DNA of 64,000 bases from contig NC_135767.1 of assembly GCF_052425735.1 (NCBI RefSeq), forward strand, positions 14,632,001 to 14,696,000, written 5' to 3'. This DNA comes from Oculina patagonica. Its lineage: Eukaryota. The notes below the pieces were generated by a model. It made no database searches. It was not told where the DNA came from and saw nothing but the letters and a program-made list of their open reading frames with translations. Positions 12,960 to 59,924 of this stretch are shown piece by piece. The first letter of the stretch is position 1. Each line of letters starts with the position of its first letter. The translations under genes were made by a program, and so were the position numbers.

Positions 12960-13461
12960 GGTTTCTTCAATGCGTCATCACTGTTAGATTGGATAGAAGA
13001 AAAGAAACACATTAAAAGAGTCAAACTCACCATAAGAAAATGTCAATCAAAAATATTTATTAGGTGACTTATATTTTAAGCTTTAAGAGATACTATACCA
13101 TTATTTATCCGACGAAACAATAACAAAACAAATTTGGCCATCACTGCGGCTGTGGAAAATTTGCGTTAGCATTTAAAACGAGATTTAAAAGAAAAGAGTG
13201 AATTTTCCGGCAAGCCCAAATGATTGTATCGACCGACATCACTTCTTTACATAACAGCAGGAACTTATATGAAGCTAACTGCTGTTTGCATAAGTTCGTA
13301 ATCAGTAAAAACTGAACGGTGCATTTAAATTAGATGCTGGCCCAGGTGGTTAAAAGCAACTTTTATTTTAACAGGATAAAACAACGCTTTCTCGGACTTT
13401 TGAAATAGCCGCTCCTGTTTATCATCAAGATATTTTAATCTCTCTTCAGTGTTGCTGGAAA
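12960..13461 (+). promoter_or_regulatory. Conserved GPCR upstream cassette (representative copy)
   Basis: CGTCATCAC..GATTGG..GTCAATCAAAA module, then GCAAGCCCAA..ATCGACCGACATCAC, GCATTTAAATTAG, CCAGGTGG (13343) and an AT-rich box; homologous blocks precede the other plus-strand paralogs. Confidence 0.7.
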
Positions 13462-14307
13462 ATGGAAACCTGGTTTTGGATTCTTGGCTGGTTTCTTTCC
13501 ATCTTGACGATGGCCGGAAATGGATTTGTTATCTTTATCGTAATCAGGAAACGCCAGCTTCGCACCAAAACCAACGCGTTCGTCGTTTCATTAGCAGTAG
13601 CTGATTTTTGTGTGGGGGTGAGTGTTGTTCCTTCACTGTTTTTCTGCGAGATATTGGGTGGATGCAACTCACAAAGTATGTCTTACAAAGTGATAGCCTT
13701 CACATGGGACCTGTTCTTGTACGCATCAGCTGTGAACTTGTGCAGTTTAGTACTGGATCGCTACATGGCGGTTGTGAAACCTTTAAAATACTTGACTTTT
13801 ACGAAGCGCCGCCGTGTCATTCAAATGATTTCCTTATCTTGGACAATTTCATTTACTATCGATGTAATTTTAAGATCACTCTGGTATAGTTCAAAAACAT
13901 CCCTCGTCATAAATATTTACGGATGGTTTTATTTAGTTTTTGAGTTACTCCTGTCCGTTATTGTAATTTTCTGCTTTTCATCCATGTTAATTGTTGTTTA
14001 CAAGCACAGCCGATCTGCCCGCAACCTAGCCAAACAGTTAAATTTCAACCATCGAGTTTTACTTAAAATCCCTGAGACATCTGCGGTTAAAACGATGGCA
14101 CTTGTTGTATGTTTGTTTCTTGTGTGCTACGGAGTTGCTTTGCGTTGTAGCTTTGTTTATGTTTTAAGTGGTCACAAATCTTGTGATGATTTCCATTACA
14201 AGATACCTCTACTAATTTTAAACTCCGCCGTTAACCCGTTAGCTTACGCCATTTTCAAGAGAGACATTAAGAAGGAGTTTAAAAGACTGATCTATTTTGT
14301 GATCTAA
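13462..14307 (+). CDS. Intronless class A GPCR (g4), intact, 281 aa
   Basis: Full 7TM ORF with LAVAD, DRY, CYG, NPLAY. Confidence 0.95.
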   Translation: METWFWILGWFLSILTMAGNGFVIFIVIRKRQLRTKTNAFVVSLAVADFCVGVSVVPSLFFCEILGGCNSQSMSYKVIAFTWDLFLYASAVNLCSLVLDRYMAVVKPLKYLTFTKRRRVIQMISLSWTISFTIDVILRSLWYSSKTSLVINIYGWFYLVFELLLSVIVIFCFSSMLIVVYKHSRSARNLAKQLNFNHRVLLKIPETSAVKTMALVVCLFLVCYGVALRCSFVYVLSGHKSCDDFHYKIPLLILNSAVNPLAYAIFKRDIKKEFKRLIYFVI

Positions 14308-14398
14308 CAAAAGTGTAACTTTCGATCAAAAAATTTGTAAATTGTCGTACTCAAGGTGGTTTTTCTCGGCATTTTAGCGAGGTTGTCTTTAGGACAAT

Positions 14399-14890
14399 AG
14401 CGAGCTTAAGCAATGACGACAGGGACACCGGGAACAACGCCATGTGAAAAATGGATTTATGTTTTTTAGTCGAGAATCTCGCAATTTTTCAGATGTATTC
14501 AGTATATCTATTGGTTTAAGAACTAGCTCTAGCTTAATATGTAAAAAGAGCGTTTAAAGTTAACCTTCGTCGCTCACGTTCTCCAAAATACGGAGAATTT
14601 GGTCATTTCACGTTGTTGTTTTGCAGACAACAACCAAAAGAAATGTACTATAATTTCAAACGCACGTGCAGAATCATTATTATGTCGATAAAACCTTTTT
14701 TGGTAACGTTCTAGTTCACGTTGTCGCCGTAGTTTGCTTAAGCCTGGTTCTCATATGATCGTCCCGATCGCCTCTGTCGCTTCTGCCGCTTCAAAAAGTT
14801 TGCTTGCTCCAATCACCTCAGACTTTGCTAACGACAGAAGCGACAGAGACGATCGGGGCGATCATATGAGAACCAGCCTTTAAGCTCCCT
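14399..14890. mobile_element. MITE carrying a nested Harbinger-like MITE (14741-14879)
   Basis: Outer AGCGAGCTTAAGCAA...TTGCTTA(insert)AGCTCCCT; inner TTA|AGCCTGGTTCTCATATGATCG...CGATCATATGAGAACCAGCCT|TTA. Confidence 0.72.
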
Positions 14891-15092
14891 TATGAAGTTC
14901 AATGTTCCCCAACGCCACCAAAATAGAGAAGAAAAACGACAACAACAGCGATAACTGAATCAAGCAGCGTGTGCAAAATGTCAAAAATGTTTCAATTGAA
15001 TATGCAAGACTAATAAAGCTTTGTTTAGAAAATAAAATGCAAAAACATAAAAAAAAACATATAATGTAATTGAATCGCAGCTTGTTTGAGTG

Positions 15093-15966: not shown

Positions 15967-16095
15967 GTTTGAGTGGATAACGCAGCAATTTATGAATGTG
16001 GGAAAGTATCCTTTGCTACAAGCGAAGTCAAAGGAATAAGCGTAACTGCAGCTGTCTGCTGGCCCACCATTAGTGCACAGGTCTACAAAGCCTTA

Positions 16096-19777: not shown

Positions 19778-22058
19778 AAAAAAGCTTAAGTAAGTTAAGA
19801 GTCTTTAAAGAAATATATTTAGTTTAGTTTAATATATTAATATGTTTAATATACACTCAATTGTTTTAATTAAGGTAGCTCGCGATCGTCGTCGAGATGT
19901 GTACATCTAAACTTCAGCGAAAACAAATTCGTTAAGGAGGACGTAGGAGAAGTAAACGACAGAATTGAAGGTAAGGTTACCAATAAAAATTGTAGAAATG
20001 AACAAAAAAATGAAAATGAAAATGTAGAAAATAAAAGCCATGCGACGGATAAGGCCACAATGACTGCGATATCGATTTGCGAAAAGGGTTGTTCTTGGCG
20101 AGATTTGAATTGTAACCAAATATCTTGGCAGATGTTGCATTCACTCGCCGAAGATTATACATGAAAGACATTTTTCTTTCATTTGATCCCCAAGACGTTT
20201 TAAACTTCCATTCTTTTAATCGAAGAGTTCGATATTGAAAACGTGCCTCAATCCAGAATTCAAGTTTTGATTGGGTTAATGACGCTTAGATTAACCAAGC
20301 TGATACTAAAATAACTTGTAAAATATCACACAGTCCACTTTTTTGCATGCAAGTAAAATGGACACTTAATTTACCCCTGTCTTCTCTCAACATTCGCCTT
20401 TATCAACCCTCTCAGAATCCCCAAACAGCCGTAATTATTGTTTTGGTATGGCAAGACAATGTGCATAATCCGTGATATTGATATGGTTAAACCATGATCT
20501 TCCTTTCAAAAATACGAAGACAAGTTATTGGAACTGAATGGGAGGCGTGAAAGTCAAACAAGCCAATCAATGGTTGCGTCATTTCTGTGATTGGTTAGAC
20601 GTTAATAGAAAACTCAGTATGTCAAAACGTCAATCGTTCAAAATCTTTTATCCGTTACTGATGCTTTCAGCTTGTTGATAAGGCTTAAAAAACAATAGAA
20701 CTTGACGTCAAGGCGCATCACGATGATGTTTCCTGATGTAGAATTAATAAATATAATTTAAACTTAAAAAAATAATAGAAAGAGGAAACTTTGCAGTTAT
20801 TGCCGATACGAAGGATTATCTCAGCTTTCAACAATGTGCGATTTTTTATATCGTTTAGTTATCGAGAACGCAGACAAGAATTAAATGCGAAAACAACTAG
20901 TTATTTGAATTGAACTGCAGGTGTGAAATACAAAGAGCCCGGTTTGTGTTTGCGTCATGCATCACTCTCAAGAAGCTTAGAAAACCAATATAAAAATGAT
21001 CATATCGTCATCAAGCTATGACATATGACATGTCATGAAGGCTTAAAGACTATTTTATTCATCCATTGCCTGCGATTAGAAGAATTATTGGCTATCTCTT
21101 GATGGTACGATATCGTTAAATAAACCAGGCATCCAAATATAAATAATGCAATGAATTTGGGGTGTAGATATCAATCAAGAGCTGATTGGTAGTTACGTCA
21201 TAACCTCTTGTTTGGCAAGGAGCTCGAAAAACCCATAAAATACGTCTAACTCGGCGTGTCAAAACTCGTCTCAAATTTTTTATGGAATAACCAGAAGGGT
21301 AAAAAAGAAGCAACGTTTCATGGTAACCATATATATGAGATAAAAAAAGATTACATGTCCAAAATTCCTTTGTCGCAGATTTAAGGCTGATTAATTTTTT
21401 TTATTTTTTTTATTTTTTGGTAACTTTGCTTTCATAGCACATAAACAAGAAAAACTTGCTCCTATTGCTGATATGAAGAATGTTTCCACTTACAATGTTT
21501 GTATCCCAAATAGAAACTTCGGCAGGAAGTCATCTGACTTGGCCTGGAGGTCGGCTTGTCTAATTAATGCTGCAAAGTGTTTGAGTCATCGCTGTTTGAT
21601 TGGTTAGAAAAAAGAAACAACTAAAAAAGTCATACTTGTTATGTCAAAACGTCACTCAAAAATCTTTATTGGGTGTTTAATGTTTTAGCTATAGAATATA
21701 TTTTACCATTTTTAGTTGAACTAATAACAAGAAAAGTTTAGCTATCAATGCGGATGTGGAAAATTTGCCTAAGCTTTTAAAACGTGATTCGAAAAATAAG
21801 CGAATTTTCCTGCAAGCCCAAATGATAGCATCGACCGACACGACTTTACCATGATAACTGAGTAGGAGCTTGTGCGTAGTAAGATGCCATTTGAATTAGC
21901 TAAGTTCTAATTAAAAATTTGAGCAATGAGGAGCCAGATGGTTATAAAAAAATAAACATTAATATAAATACGATAAAACGACGCCTCGTAGCTCTTTTTA
22001 AAAAACGCGTTCCTATTCATCATCAAGATAACTTGAACTCTCTACAGTGTAGCTGGTA

Positions 22059-22919
22059 ATGGAAACCTGGTTCTGGATTCTCGGCTGGTTTCTTTCCATC
22101 CTGACGATGACTGGAAATGGATTTGTTATCTTCACTGTTTGCGGAAAACGGAAGCTTCGAACGAAAACCAACGCGTTCATCGTTTCATTAGCAGTGGCTG
22201 ATTTCTGTGTGGGGATGAGCTTGGTACCGCCAATGTTCATCTGCGATAAAGTGAGTAAGTGCGATTCCCAAGGTGTATCTTCCAAGGTGTTAGTCTCGCT
22301 ATCGGAGCTGTTCTCGATCGCATCAGGCATGAGCCTATGTACTTTAGTACTGGACCGCTACATTGCCATTGTGAAACCTTTAAAATACTTGACTTTTATG
22401 AAGCGTCGCCGTGTCATTCAAACTATTTCCTTATCTTGGACAATTTCAGTTTCTTTCACTCTATTTGTAAGGTCACTGATTTATAGTTACGAAACGTCTC
22501 TAGTCATGCAGTATGTTATTGACTGGTTTTATACAGTTCTTGAGTTATTCACTTGTGCTATTGTAATCTTCTGCTTTGCATCCATGTTAATTGTTGTTTA
22601 CAAGCACGATCGATCTGCACGCATATTAGCCAAACAGTTGCGTTTTAATCAACGAGCTTTCTTCAAAACTCAGGATAAGTCGGCGATTAAAATGATGGCT
22701 ATTGTTGTATGCTTGTTTCTGGTGTGTTACGGAATTGCTTTGCGCTGCAACTTTGTACGTATTTTTAGTGGTCACAAATTATGTTATGATATCCAATATA
22801 AACTGCCTATTGTTGTTTTAAACTCCGCTGTAAACCCTTTGGCTTATGCCATCTTTAAGAGAGACATTCAGAAAGAGTTAACAAGACTAATCTATTCTGT
22901 AATCCATAAAAAAGTGTAA
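22059..22919 (+). CDS. Intronless class A GPCR (g7), intact, 286 aa
   Basis: Full 7TM ORF; recent duplicate of g12. Confidence 0.95.
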   Translation: METWFWILGWFLSILTMTGNGFVIFTVCGKRKLRTKTNAFIVSLAVADFCVGMSLVPPMFICDKVSKCDSQGVSSKVLVSLSELFSIASGMSLCTLVLDRYIAIVKPLKYLTFMKRRRVIQTISLSWTISVSFTLFVRSLIYSYETSLVMQYVIDWFYTVLELFTCAIVIFCFASMLIVVYKHDRSARILAKQLRFNQRAFFKTQDKSAIKMMAIVVCLFLVCYGIALRCNFVRIFSGHKLCYDIQYKLPIVVLNSAVNPLAYAIFKRDIQKELTRLIYSVIHKKV

Positions 22920-22920
22920 G

Positions 22921-23449
22921 TGTACTTATACAAACTCCGGATAATTAAACTAATTTACAGGGTGGTAAACGGTGAAGCACCAACTGCATTGTCACACCTA
23001 GCGAAATAAGCCAGGATTTCTTACAGCCTCAGAAGAAACAATAACATCGTGGTCCCTAGATTTAATTCATACTTTGCAAAAAATTCAATTGAACATAGGG
23101 GGGCCATCCTATGGAATGCTGTTTCGTCGTATAATACAGGATCCCAATTTCCGGTTTTCTATCGAAAAGTGAAAAATGACAATTATATTAAGGAGCTTAA
23201 TTTCAATGCTCAGTCGGTTCAGTCGCTCCCTAGGCATTACAATGACTTTAAATGTTACTGATTGTTATGTAATTAATTATTTTTATAGTAGATACGATCC
23301 AATTTAGTATATAAGCATTTAGTTGTAATTTAGAAATCTATTAGTTTATTAGTATTTTGTAATATTTAGTTTAATACACGACCCCACAAGCATTGTGCTT
23401 TAAACCCTATCGTGTGTAAATAAAGGTTTTGATGATGATGATGATGATG
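22921..23449 (+). mobile_element. 5'-truncated non-LTR retrotransposon (CR1/L2-like 3' end)
   Basis: Encodes YSLRRNNNIVVPRFNSYFAKNSIEHRGAILWN (ORF2 C-terminal-like); ends AATAAAGGTTTT(GAT)6; absent at the same site after g12. Confidence 0.8.
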
Positions 23450-24307
23450 GTATTTTTAGCTGCAATGTCTTGTCTGTTTTAGTAAAGGTAGATAAACTTC
23501 AGATCTAACGTTTATCACAAAGATCAGGAGATAAAATTGTTTACTTCCGTACTTTATATAGGGCGATCTTTGCTGATGTCATTGTTTACATTTTGCCTAA
23601 TTAGCGCGCATACGAATTTGCGTAGAGAAGGCATGCATCATGCTATAAAATTATACAAAGTGACTCCAGTTAATTATCAGCGAAATTGCCAGCTCTTTGT
23701 AATATTTAAGAAGATATAAGCGTTCAAAAACTGCAAAATTTAGGGGTGGCAAAAGCGCTAATGAGCCATTCATTCTTTGTCAAATATCAAGTTTTCAAAC
23801 CTGCGTCACAGAAAATGTATTTAATACATCGGGCTTAAATGTATAGCGAAAGTTAATCGTACCAAGTAGTTTCAATATTCAGAATTGATATTTTTATAGC
23901 TAGCTTTTTCTAGCGCTTAAGCTCATGAGACAAATATTGTAAAGAAAGACTAAAAGCTGCCTACGCAAATATTTTTAACAGTGTACATGTAGCTGAACAA
24001 AACCAGAACATTTATATAACACAATTATCTAGACTGTAATTTAAAAATTCGTATTTTTTTCTAGAGCAAGTTTCGCGCGCCAGGGCACACGCTTTAGGCG
24101 ATCCGCGTCTTGCCGCGTCTTTTCCGCCTGCGTCTTACCAGAAATGATTGTTTAAAGAGAAATAAAGAACGACTGTTTATCGGTCTAAGCGTTATCATGA
24201 TGCTATTTGATGTTCAAGACATGATAAAATCCCTTAAACTCCGCAGTGTCTTTAATAATGCGTAATGCAATGAAGCTTCATAAGACAGATCATTGTGCTA
24301 AAAGGTA

Positions 24308-24726: not shown

Positions 24727-26522
24727 TAAACCGAGAACTCCAATAAAAACTTCGACGACAAGTTATCTGACAAGGAAACTTGGGAGGGCGGGGAAGGATC
24801 GAATTAGCGCCGTTTGATTGGTTAAGAAGTTTGGAAAATCAATTTAAGGATGACAAAATAGATACGCATGTTAAAACATTAAATAAAACTTTTATGATGA
24901 AGTCATTGATGTTTACAGCTGTATGTAAATGATCAAATGTATAATTCAAACTTTTAAAACGAAATTTTTGCAGTCATTGCTTGCGACATAAAGGATTTGC
25001 CTTTGTTTCTAACATTGTGCATTAAATCGTGATACTATTGATATGGTTTAACTTAAACTCGGACAGTACAAAACACAATTATTCGAACTGAATGGGAAGC
25101 GTGAAAGTCAACCAAGCCAATTGATGGTTGCATCATCGCTGGGATTGTTGGAAGCTAAGCAAACCCATAAAAATTGTCAAACTAAGCCTGTCGTAAATAA
25201 TGTTTTCAGCTTTTTTATATTTAGGTTTAAAACAAAAATAACTTGACGTCATTGCGCATCCCGATATGTTGTTCGTTGCAGAAATAATAATTTTTATCGG
25301 TATATAGTTTTTTTTTAAGAAAACCGAATAGACTTTGCTGCCATTGCCGATATAAAGGATTGTCCTTGTTATAACAATGCAATTTTTTTATATTGTTAAA
25401 TAAGAACTTAGACAAGAAATGCGAGGACATATAGTTCCCCGAATTGAGTGGCAATCATGATAGTCAAAGAGGCCGATTTGAGTTTGTGTCATGCATCACT
25501 CTTTAATTGGCCAAGAAGCTTGGAAAAGCAATAAAAAAATGATCATGCGGTGATCAAACTATGACATATGACATGTCATGAAGCCATGTAGACTATTTTT
25601 ATTCATTTATTGTCGGCTATTGGAAGAATCATGGGCTATCTCTTGATGGTATCGATATGGTTGAATAAAACAGACCTCCAATTAAAAATATCGCAATGAA
25701 TGGGAATTGTAGAAGTCAATAAAGAGCTTATTTGTACCTACGTCATAACTTCTTGATTGGTTAAAAGTTCGGAAAACAAGTAAAATATGTCTATGTCTTT
25801 TATGAATTGACCAGAAGGGTGAAAAAGAAGCAACATTTCATGATAACCATATGCGAAAAGAAAAGATTGTTCAAATTGCCTTTAACCGGTTGTCGCAGAT
25901 TTTATAGTCAAAAACAAGAAAACTTGCTCTTATTGCTGATATGAAGGATCAGTGCCTCAAATTAATTAACAATGTTTGTAATCCAAATAGAAACTTTGGC
26001 AGGAAGTCATCTGCCTTGGCCTGGAGGACGACTTGTCTAATCAATGCTGCAATGTGTTTCCGTCATTGCTCTTTGATTGGTTAGAAGGAAAGAAACGACT
26101 ATATCAAAACGTCACTCAAAAATCTTTATTGGGTGTCTAATGCTTTAGCTATAGAAAATATTTTAACATTTTTTGAACTTATAACAAGAAAAGTTTAGCT
26201 ATCAATGCGGATGTGGAAAATTTGCCTTAGCTTTTAAAACGAGTTTCGAAAAATGAGCAAATTTCCCTGCGAGACTAACAGATGGCATCGCTTGACATCC
26301 CTTCTTTACATAACAGTAGTAGCTTGTGCGTAGTTAGATGTCATTTGAATAAGTAAAGTTCCTAATTAAAATGGAACGATGCATTATAATTAGTTGAGAC
26401 CAGATGGCTATAAAACAACCATTATATAAATATAAGCTAAGACAACGCGTTTTCGGTCTTTTGAAGTACTCGCTTCTATTCATCATCAAGATAATTTGAA
26501 CTCTCCACAGTGTTGCTGGAAT

Positions 26523-29376: not shown

Positions 29377-30005
29377 ATCGAAATGAATGGTAGGTTTATA
29401 TATCAATCAAGAGCTGATTGGAAGTTACGTCATCACTCCTTGATTGGTTAGAAGCTCAATAACCCATAAAATATGTCAGACTTGGTGCATCAAAACGTCA
29501 ATCAAAATCTTTATGGACTAATTGATGTTCTCAGTTTGCTTTAATTTAAATTTAAAACAAGAACATGCGAATAATAAGCAGCCTTTGAGATCCTAGATTA
29601 AATAAACATCTGCCACAAGAAAAGACCGTTAAAATGTTAACCATTTATGCTTTAACTATTAACAACGAACGTTTTGCTGATGAATGTGGGTGTGGACAAT
29701 TTGCCTTATCTTTCAAAACAAGATTAAAAAAATGAGCGAAGTTTTCTGCAAGCCTAGCTGATGGTATCGGCCGACATCTTTTCTTTACATAACAGATTTT
29801 GCTGGTGCGTAGTTAGATGTCATTTGAATAAGATAAGATCGTGATAAACTAAATGGAACGATGCATTGTAATTAGTGGAGACCGGATGATTTATAAAACA
29901 ACCTTGATATGAACACGATAAAACAATGCGACGCTTTTTCGGTTGTTTGAAATACCACTCCCGATGCGATAATCATCAATATAAATCTCTACCGTAAGCT
30001 GGAAA

Positions 30006-32406: not shown

Positions 32407-33554
32407 CCTTCGACTCGAGATGGCTGATAACTTTATTTTGTAACAAAAAGCGAAAAATACGGAAGAACTGTTAGAACTTCTTTGCGTTACAGCGTGCTAA
32501 GCCTTATGGACCTGAATGCAACGGCATTTTGACAGACATGTTTCCCCAAATTTGCAATTTTTGTGTTCCTATTAATGAAACCTAACTTTAAGGCAATTAA
32601 TTTCAACCTCCAATTAGAAATTATATCGAAACAAATTGAATGGGTTCGAGGCGTAGAAGTCGATCAAGCGCTGATTGGTAATTACCTCATCACTCCTTGA
32701 TTGGTTGAAAGCTCAGAAAACCCATAAAATATGTCAAACTCTGCAAGCCAAAACGTCAATAAAACTCTTTATGGTTTGGTCGATGTTTTTAGCTTGAATA
32801 TACGAAGTTAAGACACTGAATTAAGTATAAACATCTGCGCCAAGAGAAAAAAAAAACGTTTAAAATGATTCTTAGAGGTCTTTTGTCTGTCGCAAATTTT
32901 ATACAATGAAGCTAAAAACAAGAAAAGTTATAATTCGTGTTGCTTTCATGAAGGATTTTCCTTCGATTCAACTAAAAATGTGCGTATCCTAAATAGAAAC
33001 TTCGGCAGCAAGTTATCTGAATTGGAGGCCGGCATGTATAATTAATGCTGACAGTGTTTGCGTCATATCACTGTTTGATTGGTTAGAAGAAAAGAAAACC
33101 ACTAAAAAGTCATACTCGTCATGTCAAAACGTAAAAAGTCTTCATGAGGTGACTATTGTTTCTAGCTGTAGACGATAAATTATTGCACCATTTTATTTGA
33201 ACTAATAACAACAAAAGTTTTGCTGATCAATGCGGATGTGGAAATTTGCCTCAGCTTATAAAACGAGATTCGAAAAATAAGCAAATTTCCCTGAAAGACT
33301 AACAGATGGCATCGGCCAATATCACTTATTTACATACCAGTGGGAACTTGTGCGGTGTTAGATGTCATTTGAATAAGTTAAGTTCGTAATAAAAATTGAA
33401 CGATGCATTATAATTAGTCGAGACCAGATGGTTTATAAAACATCCTTTATATAAACAAGATAAAACAACACGTTTTCGGTCTTTTGCATTTGAAATACCT
33501 GCTTCTGCGAAAATCATCAACATTACTTGCATCTCTCTACAGTGTTGCTGGAAA

Positions 33555-35394: not shown

Positions 35395-36274
35395 AACAAA
35401 ATTTGACCAGCAATGCACAGACAATTAATGGCTATGTTAACTATCCTTTGTCAAATTCGGTCATTGGAATACAAACAGGAACAAGTACTAGAGACCAGGT
35501 GCTGTTTAAAGCAATCCTCATATGCATATATTAGGACAAAGCTCTGGCCTCTAATAGAAAATTGAAACCCGGCTTTGAACTTTCATTCGTTTCTTCTTAC
35601 CTAAAAAAAGGTTAAAAAAAAAGGTTGTTTATAGTGGTCATGCACTTAGCTTCATATCTCTTCGAGATAGCTAGTTCACAGGAATGCCACTGAAACAGAG
35701 GAAACAGAAAATTAAATGAAAATTATCGGCGATGACCAAAGAAGTAGTGGTTTGTTTGCTAAATATCATTTACATATACGGTGCATCAGACAGGCAAATT
35801 ATAGTTAATATTAATAAAGCGTTTTAGCTGTAGACGTTACCTCACTATTTTTAATTAAACTAATAGCGAGAAGGAAGTTTCGCTAACGTTTGTTGTGATA
35901 TGAAAAAAATGCCTCAGTTTCTCAACCACGACTGGAATAATAACCGAACTTTACCAGCAATGCCCAACTGACGAAAACGTAGTAGGGTGAGTAAATCGGA
36001 AATACGTTCATCAGACGACTAGATATCTTAAAATTAGCCTTAATAAAAGCACGGTAAAATCTCTCGTCAGTGCAGCTTGACGTAAAATCTTTAAGAGGTG
36101 ACAATGATGCTTTTTAGCTGTATATTGTTTTGGACCCTTATTTGCAATCAGTCTCATAATAGCGGCAACTTGCAATTGAACGTCGTTAAATGCATTTGCA
36201 TAAGTAAAGTTCTTAACAAAAAGGGGAAGAGGTGTCCAATAGATGTGACCAGATGGTTTGAAGCAACTGTTAAA

Positions 36275-45248: not shown

Positions 45249-46645
45249 CTACCCAAACATTTAATTGCCAGTGCCCACACTGTGAAGAACAGTAATCATG
45301 ATAATGAGATACATGTACACAGTTCATCAATCTCTAAATTAATCTCACATGTTGCAATACAATAATAACTGATAAAATATATGTTGTTCATAGGCAAATT
45401 TTTACTTCACCAAAACCGAACTCAGTCATTAAATAATAAAACATTAAACACAGCTGTTTTGTTTTGTGGGTGTGTCTCACAGATTAGTTATTTGTTGTTA
45501 TTTATAGTATCGGGAAAAAATACTGTCACTGTTCCAATAGGGCCCCCGTTTGAGGGGGGGGGGGGGACAAGCTACATGCAAAACTTTCCAGTTGTATGCT
45601 ATGTACAGCTATAACATACCAGTTATGGTGGGTGTATGGATATTTTCTAGAGCAACGCTTTCTTTGTTCTAGTTTCTCTTTGAGAGTTTATATATCTTTG
45701 GGAGGTTATGCACAAACTGCTAGATGATCATCCTCTTTTGATTGATCAACTATTTTTACTTTTATTTGGTGCTGTTGTTCATGGTGAAAAACAATCCATA
45801 ATATATATAAAGAAAATAACACGAATAAAAAATCATTCTAAAAAAAATGTAAAGGGCATATAACCGGGGAGCTCCGCTTTTAGGCTTGCCTAAATCTATA
45901 TATTAGTTGTGTACATGTGATCTGAATACAGTGCTGGGATTGGTTTGCAACCTCATGAATACTTAATGAATTTTACAAGGCTGTTTTATTTTTTTTTTTT
46001 TTTGGTAACTTTGCTTTCATACTGCACATAAACAAGAAAAACTTGCTCCTATTGCTGATATGAAGAAAATGTTTCCCCTAAAATTAACTTACAATGTTTG
46101 TATCCCAAATAGAAACTTCGGCAGGAAGTTATCTGACTTGGCCTGTCGGCTTGTCTAATTAATGCTGCAAAGTGTTTGAGTCATCGCTGTTTGATAAGTT
46201 AGATAAAAAGGAACGACTAAAAAAGTCATACTCGTTATGTCAAAACGTCACTCAAAAATCTTTATTGGGTGTTTAATGTTTTAGCTATAGAAGATATTTT
46301 ACCATTTTTATTTGAACTAATAACAGGAAAAGTTCAGCTATCAATGCGAATGTGGAAAATTTGCCTTAGCTTTTAAAACGTGATTAAAAAAATGAGCAAA
46401 TTTCCCTGCGAGACTAACAGATGGCATTGCCCGACATCACTTATTTACATACACGTAACAGTAGGAGCTTGTGCCATTTGAATTAGCTAAGTTTTAATTA
46501 AACATTTGAGCAATGAGCAACCAGATGGTTATAAAAAAATAAACATTTATATAAACACGATAAAACGACGCCTCGTCGCTCTTTTGAAATACGCGTTCCT
46601 GTTCATCATCAAGATAACTTGAAATCTTTACAGTGTAGCTGGAAA

Positions 46646-48816: not shown

Positions 48817-50596
48817 TAAACCGAGAACTCCAATAAAAACTTCGACGACAAGTTATCTGACAAGGAAACTGGGGAGGGCGGGGAAGGATCGAATTAGCGC
48901 CGTTTGATTGGTTAAGAAGTTTGGAAAATCAATTTAAGGATGACAAAATAGATACGCATGTTAAAACATTAAATAAAACTTTTTTGATGAAGTCATTGAT
49001 TTTTACAGCTATATGTAAATGATCAAATGTATAATTCAAACTTTTAAAACGAAATTTTGCAGTCATTGCTTGCGACATAAAGGATTTGCCTTTGTTTCTA
49101 ACATTGTGCATTAAATCGTGATACTATTGATATGGTTTAACTTAAACTCGGACAGTACAAAACACAGTTATTCGAACTGAATGGGAAGCGTGAAAGTCAA
49201 CCAAGCCAGTTGATGGTTGCATCATCGCTGGGATTGGTTGGAAGCTAAGGAAAAATTGTCAAACTAAGCCTGTCGTAAATAATGTTTTCAGCTTTTTTAT
49301 ATTTAGGTTTAAAACAAAAATAACTTGACGTCATTGCGCATCCCGATGTGTTGTTCGTTGTAGGAATAATAATTATCAGTATATAGTTTTTTTAAAAAAA
49401 GAAAACCGAATAGACAATGCAGTCATTGCCGATATAAAGGGTTGTCTTTGCTATAACAATGTGATTTTTTTTATATTGCTAAACAAGAACTCAGACAATA
49501 AATGCGAGGATAACTAGTTCCCCGAATTGCATGGCAATCATGATAGTTAAAGAGACCGATTTGAGTTTTGCGTGATGCATCACCTCTTTAATTGGCCAAG
49601 AAGCTTAGAAAACCAATATAAAAATGATCATACGGTCATCAAGCTATGACACATGACATGTCATAAAGGCATGACCACTATTTTATTGATTCATTGCCGG
49701 CGATTAGAAAAAAAAAAATGTTTAACTAAAATATATTTAATTAGAAGAATCATTGCCTATCTCTTGATGGTGTTGCCATGGTTTGAAAAGACCTCCAATT
49801 AGAAAAATCAAGATGAAGGGGGCGGAGGAGTCAATCAAGCACCAATCGGTAATTACGTCATCACTCCTTAATTGGTTAGAAGCTCAGAAAACCTATAAAA
49901 TATGTCAAACTCTGCACGTCAAAACCTCAATCAAAATCTTCTTGGAGTGACTGATGTTCTCAGTTTACTTTTATTTCAATTAAAAATGAGAAGATACGAA
50001 TGAGAAGCAACTTTTTAAGACACTTAACTATAATCATCTGCGGCAAATTTTATAGTGGCAGACTTTATAGTTAAAAACAAGGAAAATTGATGGCATCGTT
50101 CGACATCACTTATTTACATAACAGTAGGAACTTGGTGCGTTGTTAGATGTCATTTGAATAAGTTAAGTTCGTAACGTCAATCAAACATTTTCATGAAACG
50201 ACTAATGTTTTTAGCAGTAGAAGACACTTAACCATTTTTATATGAACTAACAACAAAAACGTTTTGGCGATCAATGTGGATGTCGAAGATTTACCTTAGT
50301 TTTTAAAACAAGATTAGGAAAGCGAGCGAATTTTCCTGCAAGCCCAACTGATAGCATCGGTCGACGTCACTTCTTTTTATGACAGTGGGAGCTTGTGCGT
50401 AGTTACATGACATTTCAATAAGTTAAGTTCCAAATAAAAATGGAACGATGCATTGTAATTAGTTGAGACCAGATGGTTACAAAACAACCTTAATATAAAC
50501 AAGATAAAACAACGCTTTTTCGTTCTTTTGAAATGCTACTCCTGATGTGAAAAACATCTAGATAAATTTGAAATCTCTACAGTAGAGAGCTGAAAA

Positions 50597-51442
50597 ATGG
50601 AAACCTGGTTCTGGATTCTCGGTTGGTTTCTTTCCATTCTAACGATGACTGGAAATGGATTTGTTATCTCCATTGTTTGCAGAAAACGACAGCTTCGCAC
50701 CAAAACCAACGCGTTCGTCGTTTCATTAGCAGTGGCTGATTTCTTTGTGGGGATGACCGCAGTGCCTTCGCTGTTCTTTTGCGAGATGGCGAGTAGTTGC
50801 AACACGCGAGGCCTGCATGCTGACGGTATTGACTTTATAAGGTGGCTGTTCATGTACCCATCCGCCGCGAACTTGTGCAGTTTAGTACTTGATCGCTACA
50901 TCGCCGTTGTGAAACCGTTACGATACCTGACTTTTATGAAACGTCGTCGTGTCATTCAAATGATTTCCTTATCTTGGGCAATCCCAGTTGCCTTTATAGT
51001 GTTGGAATCCTCTCTGTGGCTTAGTTTAAAAATACCTCTTATTAATCATATTATCGGTTGGTTGTGTATGCTTTTAGAGCTACTCTTATGTGTTATTTTA
51101 ATATTTTTCTTTGCCTCAATGTTGCATGTTATCTACAAGCACGCCCTATCTGTCCGTACCCTAGCTAAGCAGTTACGTTTTAACCATATAGTTTTCGTTA
51201 AAGCTCAAGAGACGTCTGCAGTTAAAATGATGGCAGTTGTTATAGGTTTGTTTCTGCTGTGCTACGGATTGCTTTTGCGTTGTAGTTTTGTAATGATTCT
51301 TAGTGATTACAAGCCTTGCAATGATCTCCAATATAAAGTACCTATTCTGCTTTTAAACTCTGCCGTTAACCCGATAGCTTACGCCGTCTTCAAGAGAGAC
51401 ATAAAGATGGAGTTTAAAAGACTGATCAATTTTGTGAAATAA
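50597..51442 (+). CDS. Intronless class A GPCR (g13), intact, 281 aa
   Basis: Full 7TM ORF; GIDFIRW subtype. Confidence 0.95.
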   Translation: METWFWILGWFLSILTMTGNGFVISIVCRKRQLRTKTNAFVVSLAVADFFVGMTAVPSLFFCEMASSCNTRGLHADGIDFIRWLFMYPSAANLCSLVLDRYIAVVKPLRYLTFMKRRRVIQMISLSWAIPVAFIVLESSLWLSLKIPLINHIIGWLCMLLELLLCVILIFFFASMLHVIYKHALSVRTLAKQLRFNHIVFVKAQETSAVKMMAVVIGLFLLCYGLLLRCSFVMILSDYKPCNDLQYKVPILLLNSAVNPIAYAVFKRDIKMEFKRLINFVK

Positions 51443-52467
51443 AAAAAGTGTAACTTATAAGAAACAGTCATACAACCTGTAAATTGTTTTACTGAAGGAG
51501 ACAATCGAGTATTCCAACATCACCAATAAAAATAAACGGCATGCAATACATGCTGAAAAGATGACGTTTCACAAGGGGTTAAAAATACATTTTCTTCGTA
51601 GATTTGCTCAATTGTACAACTGCAGTAATATTTTATTTTATATATATATATTTTTTTTGATTTCCCTATGTTGTCTCAACAAAGATTACGTTATATTATA
51701 GCGTGACTTGCGACAAACGACATACGATACGCGGGAGCTAGCTTTTAAGCTGCGAGAAAGGTCAAACGGTCTCTCAGTCCAAGAACTAGAAATCTCTGTC
51801 TACTAAATCTAATAGATCCCATCACATAAAATTTAGTCTCTTTCGTTTATACATTGTAGGGTCCCATTCTTACTGCACGGGAGTATTTTGCTTTTGCTAC
51901 GCGGCGATTTCTTGTTATTAAGTTAAACTTGATTTCTGTTCGATCGGGTGCCTGCATTAAAGCGATGACGTCATCAGTTCACGTCATCGCTTAAAAATGG
52001 TATCAAGCAACTTTAATAGTGAATGGCATCGAACAAATTTAAAAAGCAATAGATTGTTAGTCAAATTACTGACACTACATATGGAACAGGAGCCGTTGAA
52101 TAAGAGGTTAAAAATTTATATTGTTTTATTCAAAATTTGCACGTTTGTCCGGTCAGACACAGGAAATTCAACAAAGTGACCCACTCAGGTAAACTGAGAC
52201 GACGAGAAACTCGAAGGTTGCCGGTTGGCATTTCTTCAGAAACCGACAATTCAGGACTCAAACTTGTTATTAGTCTCATAACAGCAGCAACATGCAATTG
52301 AACGTCGTTAAATGCATTTGCACAAGTTAAGTTCTTAACAAAAAGGGAAAATAGAAGTTGTGTAATAACTGAGACTAGATGGCCTAAAGCAAGCGCAATG
52401 AAATAGCGCTATTTAGATAAATACCCATATTTGTTCATCATCATGACCTATACAGTGTAGCTGGAAA

Positions 52468-52510: not shown

Positions 52511-53008
52511 CTCTTTCAATTCCTGTCTTTCAATACGCCATCCCTGTTTGCTTGGTTGTATCGAAGAAAAAAAAAAACATGTCAAAACATCAATCACAAA
52601 TCTTTATTGGGTGACTATATTTTAACTTTAGAAATAACTTAATCATTTTTAGTTGAACGAAAAACAAAAAAAAAGGTTCTAAGAGAGTGTGAAAAATTTG
52701 CCTTAGTTAGCTTTAAAACAAGATATATTTTTTTTTTTAAAAAAAGTGTATTTACCTGCAAGCCCAACTGATTGTATCGAGCGTTATTACTTCTCTTTAC
52801 TTATTAACTGTGGGAGCTTGTGTGTAGTTTATTTGAATTAGTCAAGTTTGTAATCAGTAAAAACTGAGCCATGCATTATAATCAGTTGAGCCCATATGGT
52901 TATAAAACAAGCTTTGAAACAAACACGATAAACGACACATTTCGTTCTTTTGGAATACCTGCAGTGGTCTTCATTAAGATAACTTGAAATCTCTACTTAA
53001 GCTTGAAA

Positions 53009-53878
53009 ATGGATACCTGGTTCTGGTTTCTCGGCTGGCTTCTTTCCATCCTGACGATGGCTGGAAATGGAATTGCTATCTTCATTATTTGCACGAAACG
53101 ACATCTCCGAACGAAATCCAACGCGTTCGTCGTTTCATTAGCAGTGGCTGACTTTTGTGTGGGGATGAGCTTTGTTCCCTTGCAGTTCTTCTGCGATAAA
53201 GTGAGTAGGTGCGATTCCCAAGGAGCGTCTTTCAAGGTAGTAATCTTGTTGACGGAGCTGTTCTTGTACGCGTCAGCCGTGAGCTTGTGCAGTTTAGTAC
53301 TGGATCGCTACATGGCTGTTGTGAAACCTTTAAAATACTTGACTTTTATGAAGCGACGCCGTGTTATTCAAATGATTTCCTTATCTTGGACAATATCAGT
53401 TTCTTTTGTTGTATTTGTTAGAACATTCAAGGATAGTTCAAAAATACCTAAACCTTATATTATAAACATCATCGGCTGGTGTTATGTAGTTTTTGAGTTT
53501 CTCTTGTGTGCCATTTTAATGTTTTGTTTCGCAGCCATGTTAATTGTTGTTTGTAAACACGGCCGATCTGCCCGCACATTAGCCAAGCAGTTACGTTTTA
53601 ATCACCGAGTTCTCTTTAAAACTCAGGAAACGTTTGCAGTTAAAATGATGGCAGTTGTTGTGTGCTTGTTTCTTGTGTCCTACGGCCTTTTTTTGCGTTG
53701 TAGTTTAATGCATATTTTTGGTGATCGCATTGTGTGTAACAGTGATATTCAATACAAAGTGCCTATTGTTGTTTTAAACTCAGCTGTAAACCCTTTTGCT
53801 TACGCCGTCTTCAAGGGAGACATTAAGAAGGAGTTTAAAAAACTGATCCATTCTGTGGCCTTAACATTTTGTAAGTAA
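53009..53878 (+). CDS. Intronless class A GPCR (g15), intact, 289 aa
   Basis: ATG at 53009 (MDTWFW); full 7TM ORF, NPFAY. Confidence 0.95.
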   Translation: MDTWFWFLGWLLSILTMAGNGIAIFIICTKRHLRTKSNAFVVSLAVADFCVGMSFVPLQFFCDKVSRCDSQGASFKVVILLTELFLYASAVSLCSLVLDRYMAVVKPLKYLTFMKRRRVIQMISLSWTISVSFVVFVRTFKDSSKIPKPYIINIIGWCYVVFEFLLCAILMFCFAAMLIVVCKHGRSARTLAKQLRFNHRVLFKTQETFAVKMMAVVVCLFLVSYGLFLRCSLMHIFGDRIVCNSDIQYKVPIVVLNSAVNPFAYAVFKGDIKKEFKKLIHSVALTFCK

Positions 53879-56800
53879 TTTAAGCTGAAATATTCTAGCT
53901 TGTCAAGAGGAAATCATCTTCAAATCTAACACAGTTCTTTGAGTGAATCTTTTTTCCTTGAATCAGTTATGGTATACGGCACTACATGGGCATTGCCACG
54001 AAAGATATATTATAAAACGAAAGGAAACTAATGGATCTAATAGAAAATATTTTTACCTGTGTTCGAGTCGATAACATAACAGAAGTCAGAAACAATCGGT
54101 CCTTGCTTCATAAAGATTTGTAATCTACTAGATTAATCTGTTTGTACTTAAAATAAACGACTTAAACCTTGTAGTTTTGCCTTGTAATTAGTTTCATTTG
54201 AGTACTTCTCTTAAACCACTCCATGTGACGAAAGCCTTCTCTCGAAAAATAATTTATTTATTTTTCTGTTGTTGTTTTCTTCCATTATTTTCACAACTTA
54301 CATCTTTTTCTTTATGCGTTTTTGTTCAAAACACATACTTTCTTGTCTATTAATTATCATGCACCATGCTCTTAGATGTTCTTGAAAAAATCGATATCCT
54401 TGGAACTTTGTAGCGTCGCAGTGTCTTTAACAGTACGCAGTGCAGTGTACCTCTATGACTGAAAGAAATTGTTCCAGACTGGTATTAAATGGTAAGGCTT
54501 GAACTCAAGTATAAACTTTGATAAAAAATTATCTGACGAAGAGGCGGAGATGGATGTGAGATGATCAAATTAGGGCTGTTTGATTAGAAAAGAATTTTAG
54601 AAAATCAATTTATGGAAGTCGAACTCAGGCAAGAAATACGAAAACAGGTTTTTCGAATTGAGTGAAGTGAAGGTCAAGAAGCCAATCTAATAGTTACATC
54701 ATTACTACGATTGATTGGAAGCCACGTAAACCCCAAAAGTGTCAAACTCGGTTTGTCAAAACTTCAATCAAACTCTATCCCGTCAACAAGTTGGCATTGG
54801 CTGTATTGAAATTTCAAAACCTGACGTCATTATCCATCCTGCTATGATGTTTTCGGTTGTATTAATATCAATTAAATTTTCTTGCTTCTACTTGTCCCCG
54901 CTACACGTCCTCTCAGTGTGAACAACGCATTATTTTGTCGTTGTTACATGTTGCTGCGACGTGTCCCTCCGACATGTCCCACGTGTGCGGAGTCCTTTAT
55001 TGCGTTGTTCTGTAGGACGTGAGATCTGTAGTTTAAAAACCAACTAACTACATCTAGCATAATATTATTATGGCGACAAACAACGAACCCTGATAAACAG
55101 AAACAAAGAAAATTGATCGAAATCTATCAATCACAATCGAGAGACATGACCTTTTGAACCGGTTCAAGCGAACTTCTCGCTTAGATGTTTGAAGGCAGCG
55201 ACACGAACTGTTAACCATGGAAACCCGTTGATTGAACGGAGTTCGTATGTTACTGAAAGGGGAAGTAATATGGTTAAACCAGACCTTCAATTAGAAATAT
55301 CGCAAAGTAAATATAAATAGAGGCGTAGGAAATCGTTCAAGTGCTAATTGATAGTTACGTCCGGATCACCTCTTGATTGATTATAAGCCAAGAAAAGCCT
55401 TTTAAAGTCAAACTCCCAATGTCAAAAATCTTTTAAACTCTCAGGAGACTAACCGATGCTCACAGCTTCCTTTTAAGGCACTTTACTAAAACTTTCGACA
55501 AAATGGACCGTTTAAAATGACCTTTGTTCGCAGATTTTGTAGTTGAAAAACAAGAAATTCTCCTTTTATTACTGTTATGAAGAATTTACCTCAGATTTAA
55601 CTAACAATGTGTGTAACCCAACCAGCAAGTCATCTGACCGGGCCTGATGACAAGCATGTCGAATTTACGCTACATATAGTGTTTGCATCATCACTGTTTG
55701 ATTGGTTAGAAAGTAACAAAAAAAAAAAACACTAAAAAGTCATATACATCAGTTCACAACAACCTGCAAGCCCATTTGAACGATGCATTAAAATTAGAGG
55801 AGACCAGATGGTTTATAATACAGCCTTTATACATAAACACAATAAGACATCGCTTTTTCGGTGTTTTGAAATACCCGTTCCTGATCTAAGTAATGATTAC
55901 GATAACTGACTATTAGCTGGTGGCTACTCTTGAGAAATATGTCATGACGTGAGTAAAATGCGTAACAATAATAGAAGGACGCCTATAGGAAAACCAGATG
56001 GCTCAAAACAGCCTTTATAAACACGATGACATGACGAATTTTCAGTCTTTCTAAATACCTGTTTTTGGTCATCGTCTAGAATTTGGACTGCAATCCTTTA
56101 GAGTTTCTACTAAAGGAACAAGACAACTAGCCCTCATTTCCTAGCTTTGGGCGATATTCATCTCGGCTGCGCCTCGTTGACTATGCACTCATAGAAAACT
56201 CGTGATCATTTTCTAATTGCCAATTAGTTGTGTATTTTGTTTTTGGATCTTATTTGCAATTAGTTTCATAATAGTAGCAACTTGCAATTGAATGTAGTTA
56301 GATGTATTGGAATAAGTTGAGTTCTTAACAGAGAACTTATGTTTAGGATTGAACGCAAGTATTTACTTCGTGTCTGACTGGGTTATTTAGATTACTTCAT
56401 ATTTGACAGAATTTGGTTTGTTTTGGTAAACTTTTATTTATGAGGACACTTTGTGATGCTTGTCATAAAAAAAACGTGCATCTACTTAGCGTTCAAACTG
56501 GACATATCTGTAACAGAAAGGGAAAGAGTGTTCTAATATATGTAGTAAGAAGCATATCACCTAGATGCGTCTAACTTCCCTTTATGACCTAGCTTGGAAC
56601 AATGCTGGGGATTATTAGCTAACCAATAAGAAACGCGGATTTTTTTTTGTCCTTGTATGGAATTACGTGCTGCTTCCAAAAAATGGCGGCTGCTATGGGA
56701 AACCCACAAAGAAGTCAAAGAGGATGGTCTCAAAAAAGCAACGATTTAGGCGATTCTTACGGTTAGCCAAGCTGGAGAGACTAAGGCAGAAGAGGATATG

Positions 56801-57447
56801 TTTGTAATGGTCTGCAGGGAGGTCACGGACGCGTTTGAGGTTTAATTTGGAGCATTATCTTTTTTACTTATTTTTCGAGAAGGTGAAGGGAAACTCTGAC
56901 AGGTATTCAAGGTTGCAGGTAAGGTTTAACGAGTTTGAGCAGCAGTGATGTAGGTCGTCTTCGAGCTGAAACGTTTGAAGTCGTTCATGTTTTGTTACCT
57001 GCATGAAGAGCTTGTTCAGTGTTAGTTGAGGCACATCAACATGTACGTTGATGAGGACCATGCTTCTTTTCTAAAACTAGGTTTTGTCGCCGTGCGTATT
57101 AAAATAAATGAGAGGAATGGGAGGCGACAGGAGAAAATCAAGAGCTGTTTTGGTAGTTACATCATCACTTCTTGATTGGTTGAAAGCTCAAAGAACCATT
57201 AAATGTCAAATTTGGAATGTCAAAACGTCCCGCACTCAAGTTTGTTCAGTTTACATGAATTTCAATTAAAAACAAGGAGCGAAATGTCTGCGACAAAATA
57301 GACGGTTTTAAGTGGTTTTTGATCGCCGATTGTAGTTGATAATTATTGTTATTGATAGTTATTGCTGATTCGAAGGATTTACGACAGCAAAGTATCTGAT
57401 TTAGGGGCCATTATATGTACCTAATGCTGCACACTGTTGGCGTCGTC

Positions 57448-58041
57448 TAGGGCTTTCCACAAGTTGCTCGAGATTTTCCAAAAGGTTGCCAGCAATTTCT
57501 CAAAACGTTGCTCAAAAGTTGCTTCAAAAATCCAAAAAGCTGCTTTTGTTACTAAAAGTTGCTCGAACGTTGCTCCGAAAAATCCAAAACCCTGCTTCTT
57601 ATCAAATTTCTCTAAATATATGCTCATTTTTCCTACGAGGGTAAGATTTCTAAGCAGTTTTATGCAATTTTACAACATAAGAAGTATCTAAATAACATAT
57701 TAAGTGGAAAGTTGTTAAATAACAAGGATTTCTTTAACTGAGAAAAATCGTGAAGATATCGCTGACGTCATGTTTGCTTACGAGGTTTGTAATGTTTTAA
57801 TACAGAATGAGCCGAGGGTCTTCAGATGTTCTCGACAATTTTCGACAAACCTCGCCAATCTTCGGAAACGTTCGTATGGCCTTTGAACAACACTCAGATA
57901 ATCTTCGGAGATCTTCGGTCTGGAAATTGCTCAAAATTCAACAAGTTGCTCGAGAGGAAAAAAAATTGCTCAAAGTGGAAAAAGTTGCTCGAAATACGAA
58001 AAGTTGCCAAAAAGTTGCCGAGCAACTTGTGGAAAGCCCTA
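57448..58041. mobile_element. hAT-like MITE inserted in an orphan promoter module
   Basis: GCGTCGTC|TAGGGCTTTCCACAAGTTGCTCG...CGAGCAACTTGTGGAAAGCCCTA|GCGTCATC (8-bp TSD, 1 mismatch); many GTTGCTC repeats. Confidence 0.85.
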
Positions 58042-59924
58042 GCGTCATCACTGATTGATTGGTTAGAAAAACACCAAATAATTCATACTTGTCATGTCAA
58101 AAACGTCAATCAAATATTTAACCATTTCATTTAAATTAATAAGAATTTTTTGCTGAACAATGTTGATGTGGAAATTTGACTATTAAAGCGAGATTCGAAA
58201 AATAAGTGAGTTTTCCTGCAATATGAACTGATCGCATCGACAGACATCACTTGTTTACTTAACAGTAAGTGCTTGTGCGTAGTAACATGCCATTTGAAAA
58301 ACGATACATTATAATTAGTCGATACCAGATGGTTTATGACAAATTTGAACCGAATTCCATCCTGAGCACTTGTTGGAATCTTTATTGAAAGGGTACAGTG
58401 AAGCGTAAAACTCAAAACTAAATTAAACTTGCACTTTAGTGCTTTTTTTGTTTGTTTGTTTGTCTTTTCATTTTAATTATGAGAAGTTACAATTGACCAT
58501 CATCGTTCTTTTGTCAATGTCGACCCGGACTCTGGCCAAGTCTAACTTGTAAGACTGCTATTTACGGACTTCCGGGCGCTTATCCTCAAATCCAATTGGC
58601 TGATAATTGAAAAGGAACACTGTGCACATGCTCAAAATACGTACTTTTCCAAAGTCCTCGTTCTTGGTAATGACAAAAAAAGCGGGCTTTGTTGACAAGA
58701 TTGATTTTTTGTAAGTCAACAGTATCGATCGATCCTTTGCACTTCGGCTTCGTTATCCGTTTTCCATGTGATAGTGCTCAATCTTCGAAGTTCACATTTA
58801 CACGGATGTGCCAGTTGTATCTGAGGATTTTCATACTAACAACGAGTTAACTTCTATCCAGGCGGTTTAAAGTACCGGCCCAAACGGGAAATTTATTGAT
58901 GCAAACGACACATTTATATCCTGAAAATCTTTTTGCTCGCAGTCCTAGCATTGCGTGTTCATCCGAAAGGACAATCATTACAACATTTATTTCAATGAAA
59001 TCCTGTGTGAAAACGAGACATTTTTTTTTCTTTCCAGACAAAACAAGACGTGGCCAATCTCCTCACCTTTTTCGTATAACGGCCCGGGTTGTAAATAACG
59101 ACTGACATTGACGTTAATTTGTTAAAATCACCAAAAACGTCTATGAAGCGTCTTCAATAACAGGTTTTCCGACGGGTTGAGACATAAAGAAGAAGCAATC
59201 AATCATGTTTACGTCATCACTGCTGTTTGGCCAAGAAGTTAAGAAAGATGTCAAACGTTAATTAACTCTGTATCTTAAAACGTCAGTCAATGTATTTTGT
59301 GAAGTGAGTGATGTTTTCATCTAAATATACCATTTAGTTATTTTCACTAAAGATATTTAAAGCTTTGCTATTTTTCTGGTACTTTTGGATAATTCTGTTT
59401 TGGTTTTCAACCATTTTCATTACAAAATTTGACCAGCAATGCAAAAACAATTAAATGAAATTATTAGTCAATGAGAGAAGAAAAAATTGTTTGTTATCTT
59501 AATGTGACTTAATTATATATTAAGTACATGGTGCATAAATTAGGCTAGGTTATAATATTAAACGTCATCTTTCTATTTTTAAATTTAATAGATAGCAAGA
59601 AAAACTTTTTGCAAGCCTCAACTGGAAAAATAAACGATTTGTTTAGTTTTGTCCAACTAACGGGAACGTACAATCAGAAGTATCGTTTCCTGCTCTAGGA
59701 TCATTTTTTAAAAACATAAAATTGAAAAACTACAGGTACGAAGTTTGATGTTATAACGTGAGTAACGTTTGTAATAAAAACGGAAAGATGTCAAAAGGAC
59801 AACCAGGTGGTTTAAAACAGCCTTTATTAAAACACGATGAAATACTCCTTTTCGGTCTTTAAAATACCTGTTTTTGCTCATGATCAAAATAAAAAGTTCT
59901 TTCTTTTTGCAGTGTCGCTGGAAT

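Follow-up and report, generated by a model that had tools for sequence, protein, structure and literature searches.

The 64,000-nt stretch of Oculina patagonica DNA analysed here (contig NC_135767.1, positions 14,632,001 to 14,696,000; called the window below; GC about 0.37) carries a tandem array of receptor genes, and we describe an E-box (CANNTG) element that recurs at a fixed distance before their start codons. The genes are single-exon (intronless) open reading frames (ORFs) of 280-289 aa. By tblastn, 9 intact genes were found, 8 on the plus strand (ATGs at 13462, 22059, 26523, 33555, 46646, 50597, 53009 and 59925) and 1 on the minus strand (g1; 5346-6188, ATG 6188), together with pseudogenes or fragments at 30006, 37156, 17868 and 19403 (plus strand) and at 9483 and 11647 (minus strand). 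Each ORF matches Pfam 7tm_1, the rhodopsin family (E 1e-27 to 1e-31), and the Srsx and olfactory-type Pfam matches are weak. Relatives in the databases were found in Oculina patagonica, in Desmophyllum pertusum and Porites lobata and in a large number of other coral assemblies, and bear only automatic names (“octopamine/histamine/adenosine receptor-like”), while the ESM Atlas neighbours of the receptor proteins are cnidarian G-protein-coupled receptor (GPCR) clusters. Judged by these matches, the window genes are assigned to a coral-expanded and coral-specific orphan family of class-A (rhodopsin-class) GPCRs of about 285 aa. Homology among the gene units ends within about 20 bp past the stop codon.

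In the window CCANNTGG occurs at 20 sites (8.1 expected), a number that was reached by none of 100 shuffles; 12 of the 20 belong to the promoters of the receptor family, and the remaining 8 are what chance would give. An earlier note on this DNA had placed CCANNTGG 116-130 bp 5' of the ATG of every intact plus-strand gene, and it turned out that this holds for 8 of 8, with distances measured from the C of CA to the ATG. The CAGGTG form CCAGGTGG is found at 13342..13357 (with the AT-rich box TTAAAAGC behind it; -119; gene 13462-14307) and at 59803..59818 (with TTTAAAAC; -121; gene 59925-60785). Five genes carry CCAGATGG: at 21934..21949 (then TTATAAAA; -124; gene 22059-22919), 26400..26415 (then CTATAAAA; -122; gene 26523-27371), 33424..33440 (then TTTATAAAA; -130; gene 33555-34415), 46521..46536 (then TTATAAAA; -124; gene 46646-47506) and 50469..50484 (then TTACAAAA; -127; gene 50597-51442). 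The CATATG form CCATATGG, again followed by TTATAAAA, lies at 52892..52907 (-116; gene 53009-53878). CA and TG are invariant in all eight, and only the two central bases vary (GA in 5, GG in 2, TA in 1). As these rows indicate, a TATA-like box, TTATAAAA or a one-base variant of it, stands 0-1 nt 3' of the E-box in the window genes, a feature missed in the earlier note.

The earlier note also overlooked that the paralogues can be aligned over their entire upstream region, about 430 bp in length. Among the seven core genes the upstream identity is 0.70-0.88, compared with 0.55-0.74 at fourfold-degenerate sites, and the 3' flanks of the core genes have fallen to 0.41, the level of a random alignment. 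Since the promoter is at or above fourfold identity and the 3' flanks are unalignable, the promoter as a whole looks constrained. Within it, the E-box ranks first among the 8-column windows of the 8-gene alignment, with 6 of its 8 columns invariant and an information content of 1.83 bits per column, and among the 16-column windows the first place goes to E-box plus TATA; in other blocks 5 columns are invariant. When the motif was compared with its flanks in the window, it ranked first but was no outlier, and the statement that it is conserved no better than the flanks could not be confidently rejected there. The case for special conservation rests on external promoters.

We fetched 12 loci around proteins of the family from other chromosomes and other coral assemblies, which gave 26 further promoters; together with the window they form a set of 35 that includes Desmophyllum and another Oculina chromosome. 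Most of the 26 carry GACCA(G/T)ATG(G/T) at -96 to -129. For instance, a Desmophyllum promoter has GACCATATGT plus TTTTATAAAA, the promoter on the other Oculina chromosome has GAACAGATGT plus TTTAAAATA, and that of locus L008, whose flanks share nothing with the window, has GACCAGATGGC without TATA. In the 35 promoters, 22 of the 31 occurrences of CAGATG, CATCTG or CATATG in -300 to -1 fall at -135 to -91 (background 0.02 per 30 nt). Promoters were then grouped by flank similarity with the motif masked, and the three 8-mers that recurred in the largest number of flank-independent groups were ACCAGATG, CCAGATGG and GACCAGAT, with an interquartile range of -125 to -107; all other top shared k-mers were A/T-rich and positionally diffuse. 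The E-box is the one block that persists between promoter clusters, at loci whose proteins are 55-65% identical.

Because ascertainment through the motif was to be avoided, metagenome contigs were searched by the conserved coding start only, and 47 loci yielded 33 non-redundant promoters. Their CANNTG matches peak at -120 to -76 (23 of 56), and the adjoining bins are empty. The commonest form in this sample is GAACAGGTG(G/T)C, followed 2 bases on by TTTAAA or TTTGAA, and a TCAAGTGG subgroup is present as well, beside CAGATG and CATATG. Over all samples, CANNTG lies at -140 to -78 in 49 of 66 family promoters, where about 22% would be expected (an estimate from the off-peak rate). The orientation is fixed (CAGATG 14, CATCTG 2), GAC stands directly 5' of the motif in 15 of the 24 instances (consensus GA(C/A)), and the constraint on CA and TG holds in the 24 external instances too. 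The centre, which the earlier note had called free, is instead lineage-specific: CAGGTG accounts for 11 of 18 in the metagenome sample, beside 3 CAGATG and 1 CATATG, and CAGATG or CATATG dominates elsewhere. Its proposal of selection on the motif, on the other hand, gains support, as distance and orientation are kept across corals with unalignable flanks and the motif is linked to gene integrity (below). In one promoter subgroup (loci L017, L019, L038, L049, L055, L059 and L060) (C/A)TCAAGTG(G/A) at about -80 to -86 replaces CAGRTG; formally this is an E-box. It also fits the classical NK2-homeodomain core TCAAGTG.

A box resembling TATAWAWR was found next to the E-box, and 14 of the 24 instances have a TATA-like box no more than 14 nt away (background 7%). 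An element ATGCAT(T/G)(A/T)TAATTAG, or at least TAATTA, was observed 7-15 nt 5' of the E-box; in the promoter of 26523 it is ATGCATTATAATTAG (26379-26393), and the same element is present in the promoters of 33555, 50597, 53009, 13462 and 30006, in promoter remnants at 55804 and 58325 and at loci L012, L008 and L001. TAATTA is within 30 nt of the E-box in 9 of 24 instances (background 3.5%), and the element looks like a POU/homeodomain site that would form a composite with the E-box. An A-rich AAAACAA stretch follows 3' of the E-box in window promoters. The E-box is one block of a conserved cassette (homeodomain-like TAATTA, E-box, AT-rich box) and not a stand-alone site. The putative cassette reads GA(C/A)-CA(G/T)(G/A)TG-(G/T)(C/T), 0-2 nt, AT-rich TATA-like box, about 90-130 bp before the start codon, often with a TAAT-type site 7-15 nt 5' of its E-box; it would be inherited with each duplication in the family and held by purifying selection. 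Within this family-wide promoter cassette the motif very probably has a function as a cis-element and is under selection.

To relate the motif to the state of the genes, we counted CANNTG at -140 to -78 in copies with an ATG-anchored start. In the window it is present before 8 of 9 intact and 0 of 4 broken ORFs (p=0.007), in the metagenome sample before 16 of 19 intact and 4 of 11 broken ORFs (p=0.015), and at the fetched loci before 11 of 17 and 5 of 8, respectively, which is not significant; pooled, the counts are 35 of 45 and 9 of 23 (p=0.003). These p values are optimistic, because the copies are related. The link runs in the direction that is expected if selection holds the motif in live genes while dead copies decay. 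The broken motifs listed in the earlier note (g9, g14, g2 and g3, with g11 displaced) are as described there. The decayed motif CCGGATGA (29882..29889, plus strand) precedes the pseudogene with ATG 30006, whose ORF ends after 152 aa; CTAGATGG (52375..52382, plus strand) precedes g14, a dead start-codon remnant; and the g3 promoter has been replaced by sequence unalignable to the paralogues. The integrity link is limited by four dead promoters that keep a perfect CCAGATGG, all on the plus strand. One is the g11 promoter remnant (36249..36256), separated by about 880 bp of foreign sequence from the gene fragment with ATG 37156. The other three, absent from the earlier note, are gene-less: 55804..55811, where TTTATAAT follows, 55994..56001, a second remnant 190 bp beyond it, and 58325..58332, where homology covers only -366 to -115. 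We also observed that at about 11850-11947 (minus strand), 5' of the pseudogene with ATG 11647, the usual promoter has been swapped for other sequence, which holds two tandem CCAAGATGGCGG (YY1-like), one CACGTG and one TGACGTCA, with a C14 run after them; this sequence resembles a promoter of housekeeping or transposon type that was inserted here.

As for what reads the motif, it consists of two half-sites, CA..TG, of which the 5' CAG is invariant and the 3' half is CAT or CAC by lineage, and this follows the logic of a basic helix-loop-helix (bHLH) dimer. Such a dimer is a likely binder, and would be expected to bind sites of the forms GACCAGATGG and GAACAGGTGG. In the simplest arrangement, an E-protein would occupy the 5' CAG and a tissue-restricted group-A partner the variable 3' half (CAT/CAC); binding would activate the genes and give the whole family a common cell-type-specific expression, and the AT-rich box would probably set the transcription start site (TSS) about 30 bp downstream. 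Group-A bHLHs related to Atonal and to Twist are present in cnidarians, Acropora among them (PMC5064789). The earlier note had named a proneural factor of the Atonal/NeuroD/Neurogenin class as the driver. CADATG (CAGATG/CATATG) is indeed a documented Neurogenin/NeuroD preference, while CAGSTG is preferred by E-proteins, ASCL1 and ATOH1, with CAGCTG as the reported preference of the last two (PMC6126921). CADATG occurs in 6 of 8 window promoters and CAGGTG in 2 of 8. Since the family spans the CADATG and CAGSTG classes, with CAGGTG in 11 of 18 of the metagenome sample, a bHLH dimer stays plausible but the assignment to Atonal/NeuroD/Neurogenin is too narrow; a specifically proneural Atonal/NeuroD factor is possible, though we hold it doubtful. 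With fair confidence, we explain the whole as a bHLH-read E-box forming the core of an inherited and selected promoter cassette.

Several observations weigh against this explanation. In the 8-gene alignment, 19% of the column shuffles contain some window in which 6 or more columns are invariant (P ~0.19), and in four other promoter clusters the E-box is a conserved block that ranks third, fourth or lower. Pooled over the samples, 10 of 45 intact genes are without the motif, and together with the four remnants that keep it this reduces the claim that the E-box tracks integrity to a tendency. Intact g1 is an exception already given in the earlier note, which we confirmed: it carries CAGACG, as CCAGACGG with the core T changed to C, 96 bp 5' of the gene (6278..6285, minus strand). 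The g2 pseudogene (ATG 9483, minus strand) has CAGACG as in g1, in ACAGACGA at 9567-9574; as both share the T-to-C change, the minus-strand subgroup probably lost the motif once. An E-box abutting TATA would sit where TFIIB makes its contact, and activator sites are not usually found there. RNA contigs from two runs lie without mismatch on 21806-21951 and 21731-21953 and cross the motif of the gene at 22059, and the near-identical contigs L013 and L014 (mRNA-like Logan contigs of protein P0030, another family member; about 1.49 kb, two runs) start 19 nt 5' of the ATG. Finally, cell-type-specific promoters of Nematostella are reported to be without TATA motifs (10.1101/2025.07.01.662323).

With regard to the start of transcription, ATG and CAT number 59 and 89 from about -80 to -1 and 182 and 177 further upstream (p=0.03). 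The AT-rich box, together with a depletion of ATG that begins only at about -80, fits a TSS about 30 bp 3' of the box, a TATA box being expected 25-35 bp 5' of the TSS; the contigs over the motif of gene 22059 and the start of L013 and L014 at -19 do not fit. L013 and L014 end about 20 nt past AATAAA, have a 3' untranslated region (UTR) of about 617 nt and resemble complete mRNAs whose 5' UTR is very short. The contigs over the motif of gene 22059 both end within the A-run of the AT-rich box; they could have arisen from oligo-dT that primed inside a longer sense RNA, or they could be promoter transcripts in antisense. The public-run contigs mapped onto the window around this motif are unstranded, with a depth of 2-8.

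A binder other than bHLH, for which we see a limited chance, would be a zinc-finger repressor of the Snail/Scratch type, with the core ACAGGTG, or a factor of the core promoter for which E-box and AT-rich box form a single composite element. The commonest metagenome form, GAACAGGTG(G/T)C, agrees with Snail/Scratch specificity, and the fixed orientation and 0-2 nt spacing to the AT-rich box suggest a composite element adjoining the basal machinery. The CAGGTG core that Snail/Scratch needs is found in the metagenome cluster, but in the window it is present in 2 of 8 genes only; the other 6 and many external promoters carry CAGATG or CATATG, which are poor Snail-type but normal bHLH sites. Besides, the conserved pair of half-sites, CA..TG, is the signature of a dimer.

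It is improbable that the motif is under no selection and merely part of a promoter that was recently duplicated or homogenised by gene conversion. The alignment of the whole 430 bp upstream, the 19% of column shuffles that are equally invariant and the perfect motif in four dead remnants are all as such an origin would leave them. However, distance and orientation are the same in clusters without detectable flank similarity from different coral assemblies, the motif is lost more often before broken ORFs, and fourfold sites are more diverged than the promoter; moreover, the 55-65% protein identity argues against recent transfer of one promoter. Pure shared ancestry is therefore disfavoured.

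Slighter still is the probability of an element acting at the RNA level, that is, an upstream ATG or start of an upstream ORF, or some other signal of the 5' UTR, in a transcript with a start farther upstream. The mismatch-free contigs on 21731-21953 span the motif of gene 22059, and nearby silent stretches have zero coverage (for 24800-26599, zero in the contigs of the same RNA libraries); CAGATGG and CATATGG do contain ATG followed by G. However, CAGGTG, which has no ATG, is the majority form in the metagenome sample and occurs in two window genes, upstream of -80 there are several more conserved ATGs and the depletion of ATG is confined to the part downstream of about -80, and the contigs in question are unstranded, with a depth of 4-5 over the motif.

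Four narrower candidates were tried and rejected. A splice acceptor CCAG|ATGG of a 5'-UTR intron fails at the CATATG copies (52892, L001 and the L009/L010 group), which have no AG, and an upstream start codon as such is unlikely with CAGGTG copies that contain no ATG. A YY1-like AGATGG does not fit the ATGT-ending copies (L001, L006 and L009/L010) or the GTGG copies, which keep the CA..TG frame only, and the 7 nt before the TATA box bear no resemblance to SSRCGCC, the consensus of the upstream TFIIB recognition element (BREu).

The closest known counterpart of a bHLH-read cassette is in Caenorhabditis elegans, where CACCTG E-boxes are concentrated at -200 to -20 of sre, srh, sri and srz chemoreceptor genes (PMC2576165), the E-box of the ADL neuron is necessary for expression (PMC4972359), and HLH-4/HLH-2 reads it, acting as terminal selector for a large set of GPCR genes (PMC5908064). 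In many members of a clustered and expanded family of chemoreceptor-type GPCRs the coral E-box likewise stands no more than about 200 bp from the start codon, it is kept across paralogues and species, and coral CAGGTG is the same hexamer. The worm motif has neither orientation preference nor conserved flanks (PMC5908064), whereas the coral motif is oriented (14 to 2, unlike the ADL pattern), has a GA(C/A) flank and adjoins an AT-rich box; its centre varies by lineage (GG, GA, TA), in contrast to the CACCTG/CAGGTG core of the worm. In the worm the E-box is needed in one sensory neuron type, while the coral case is known from sequence. By this analogy, the coral arrangement appears to be the same in kind as the ADL system and no new kind of mechanism.

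Other comparisons are looser. The CADATG sites of Neurogenin/NeuroD (CAT-CAG and CAT-CAT in the nomenclature of 10.64898/2026.02.10.705010) are matched in 6 of 8 window promoters, but the commonest centre family-wide is CAGGTG, of the E-protein type CAGSTG. Vertebrate proneural sites are usually in distal enhancers, whereas the coral site is beside a TATA-like box, and the orthology of cnidarian Atonal- and Twist-related bHLHs to NeuroD/Neurogenin is not one-to-one. The motif grammar seen most often in Nematostella cnidocytes combines Pou4, an E-box for bHLH and Fox (10.1101/2025.07.01.662323). By eye only, the window promoters resemble it, with ATGCAT..TAATTAG about 10 nt 5' of the E-box and the A-rich AAAACAA 3' of it. 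ATGCAT..TAATTAG looks POU/homeodomain-like when set beside POU4 sites. Clustered vertebrate receptor genes also have promoter elements of their own, namely homeodomain plus O/E sites in odorant receptors and the conserved sequence element (CSE) in protocadherins. As in these arrays, each tandem member in the coral has its own short start-proximal element, inherited by duplication. Motifs and factors differ, and the coral sequences give no evidence of one-receptor-per-cell choice.

To our knowledge, almost nothing is known about the regulation of large lineage-specific orphan GPCR families in corals or about the cells that express them. The family-wide promoter signature predicts co-expression, which can be checked in coral and anemone single-cell atlases; it also names a short list of candidate regulators (group-A bHLHs and an E-protein) and offers a minimal promoter for cell-type-specific transgenes. 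Much more tentatively, and with the odds rather against it, corals, like nematodes, may switch on an entire battery of chemoreceptor-type GPCRs that duplicate rapidly, through one proximal E-box which a group-A bHLH reads as terminal selector, perhaps helped by a POU/homeodomain partner at the adjacent TAATTA. If so, bHLH control of sensory receptor batteries would be an ancestral eumetazoan logic, and sequence would by itself reveal which receptors make up the repertoire of one cell type of the coral, sensory or cnidocyte-associated. In any case the signature allows the proposal that bHLHs were ancestrally used as terminal selectors (PMC5908064) to be tested outside Bilateria.

Some further features of the promoters and the window were observed. 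A second oriented motif, (A/G)TACGTCAAG, contains ACGTCA, half of a site like the cyclic AMP response element (CRE), and is found in 20 of 66 family promoters with a peak at -160 to -101; ACGTCA is present in 20 promoters and TGACGT in 3 (loci L015-L061, L002 and L004, at about -160 to -101). Close to the ATG (-45 to -15; also in L001, L002 and L006) are the conserved blocks ATCATCAAGAT, which in L001 is the full palindrome CTTGATGATCATCAAG, and CTACAGTGT, which could be an initiator or a splice acceptor. What's more, from 4 bases past the stop of gene 22059 (region 22923-23600) the sequence equals the 3' end of an RNA contig that is 1348 nt long, belongs to another place and has a depth of about 100, and over 24200-24800 the RNA contig depth is 1400-2900; both transcribed stretches are probably expressed repeats.

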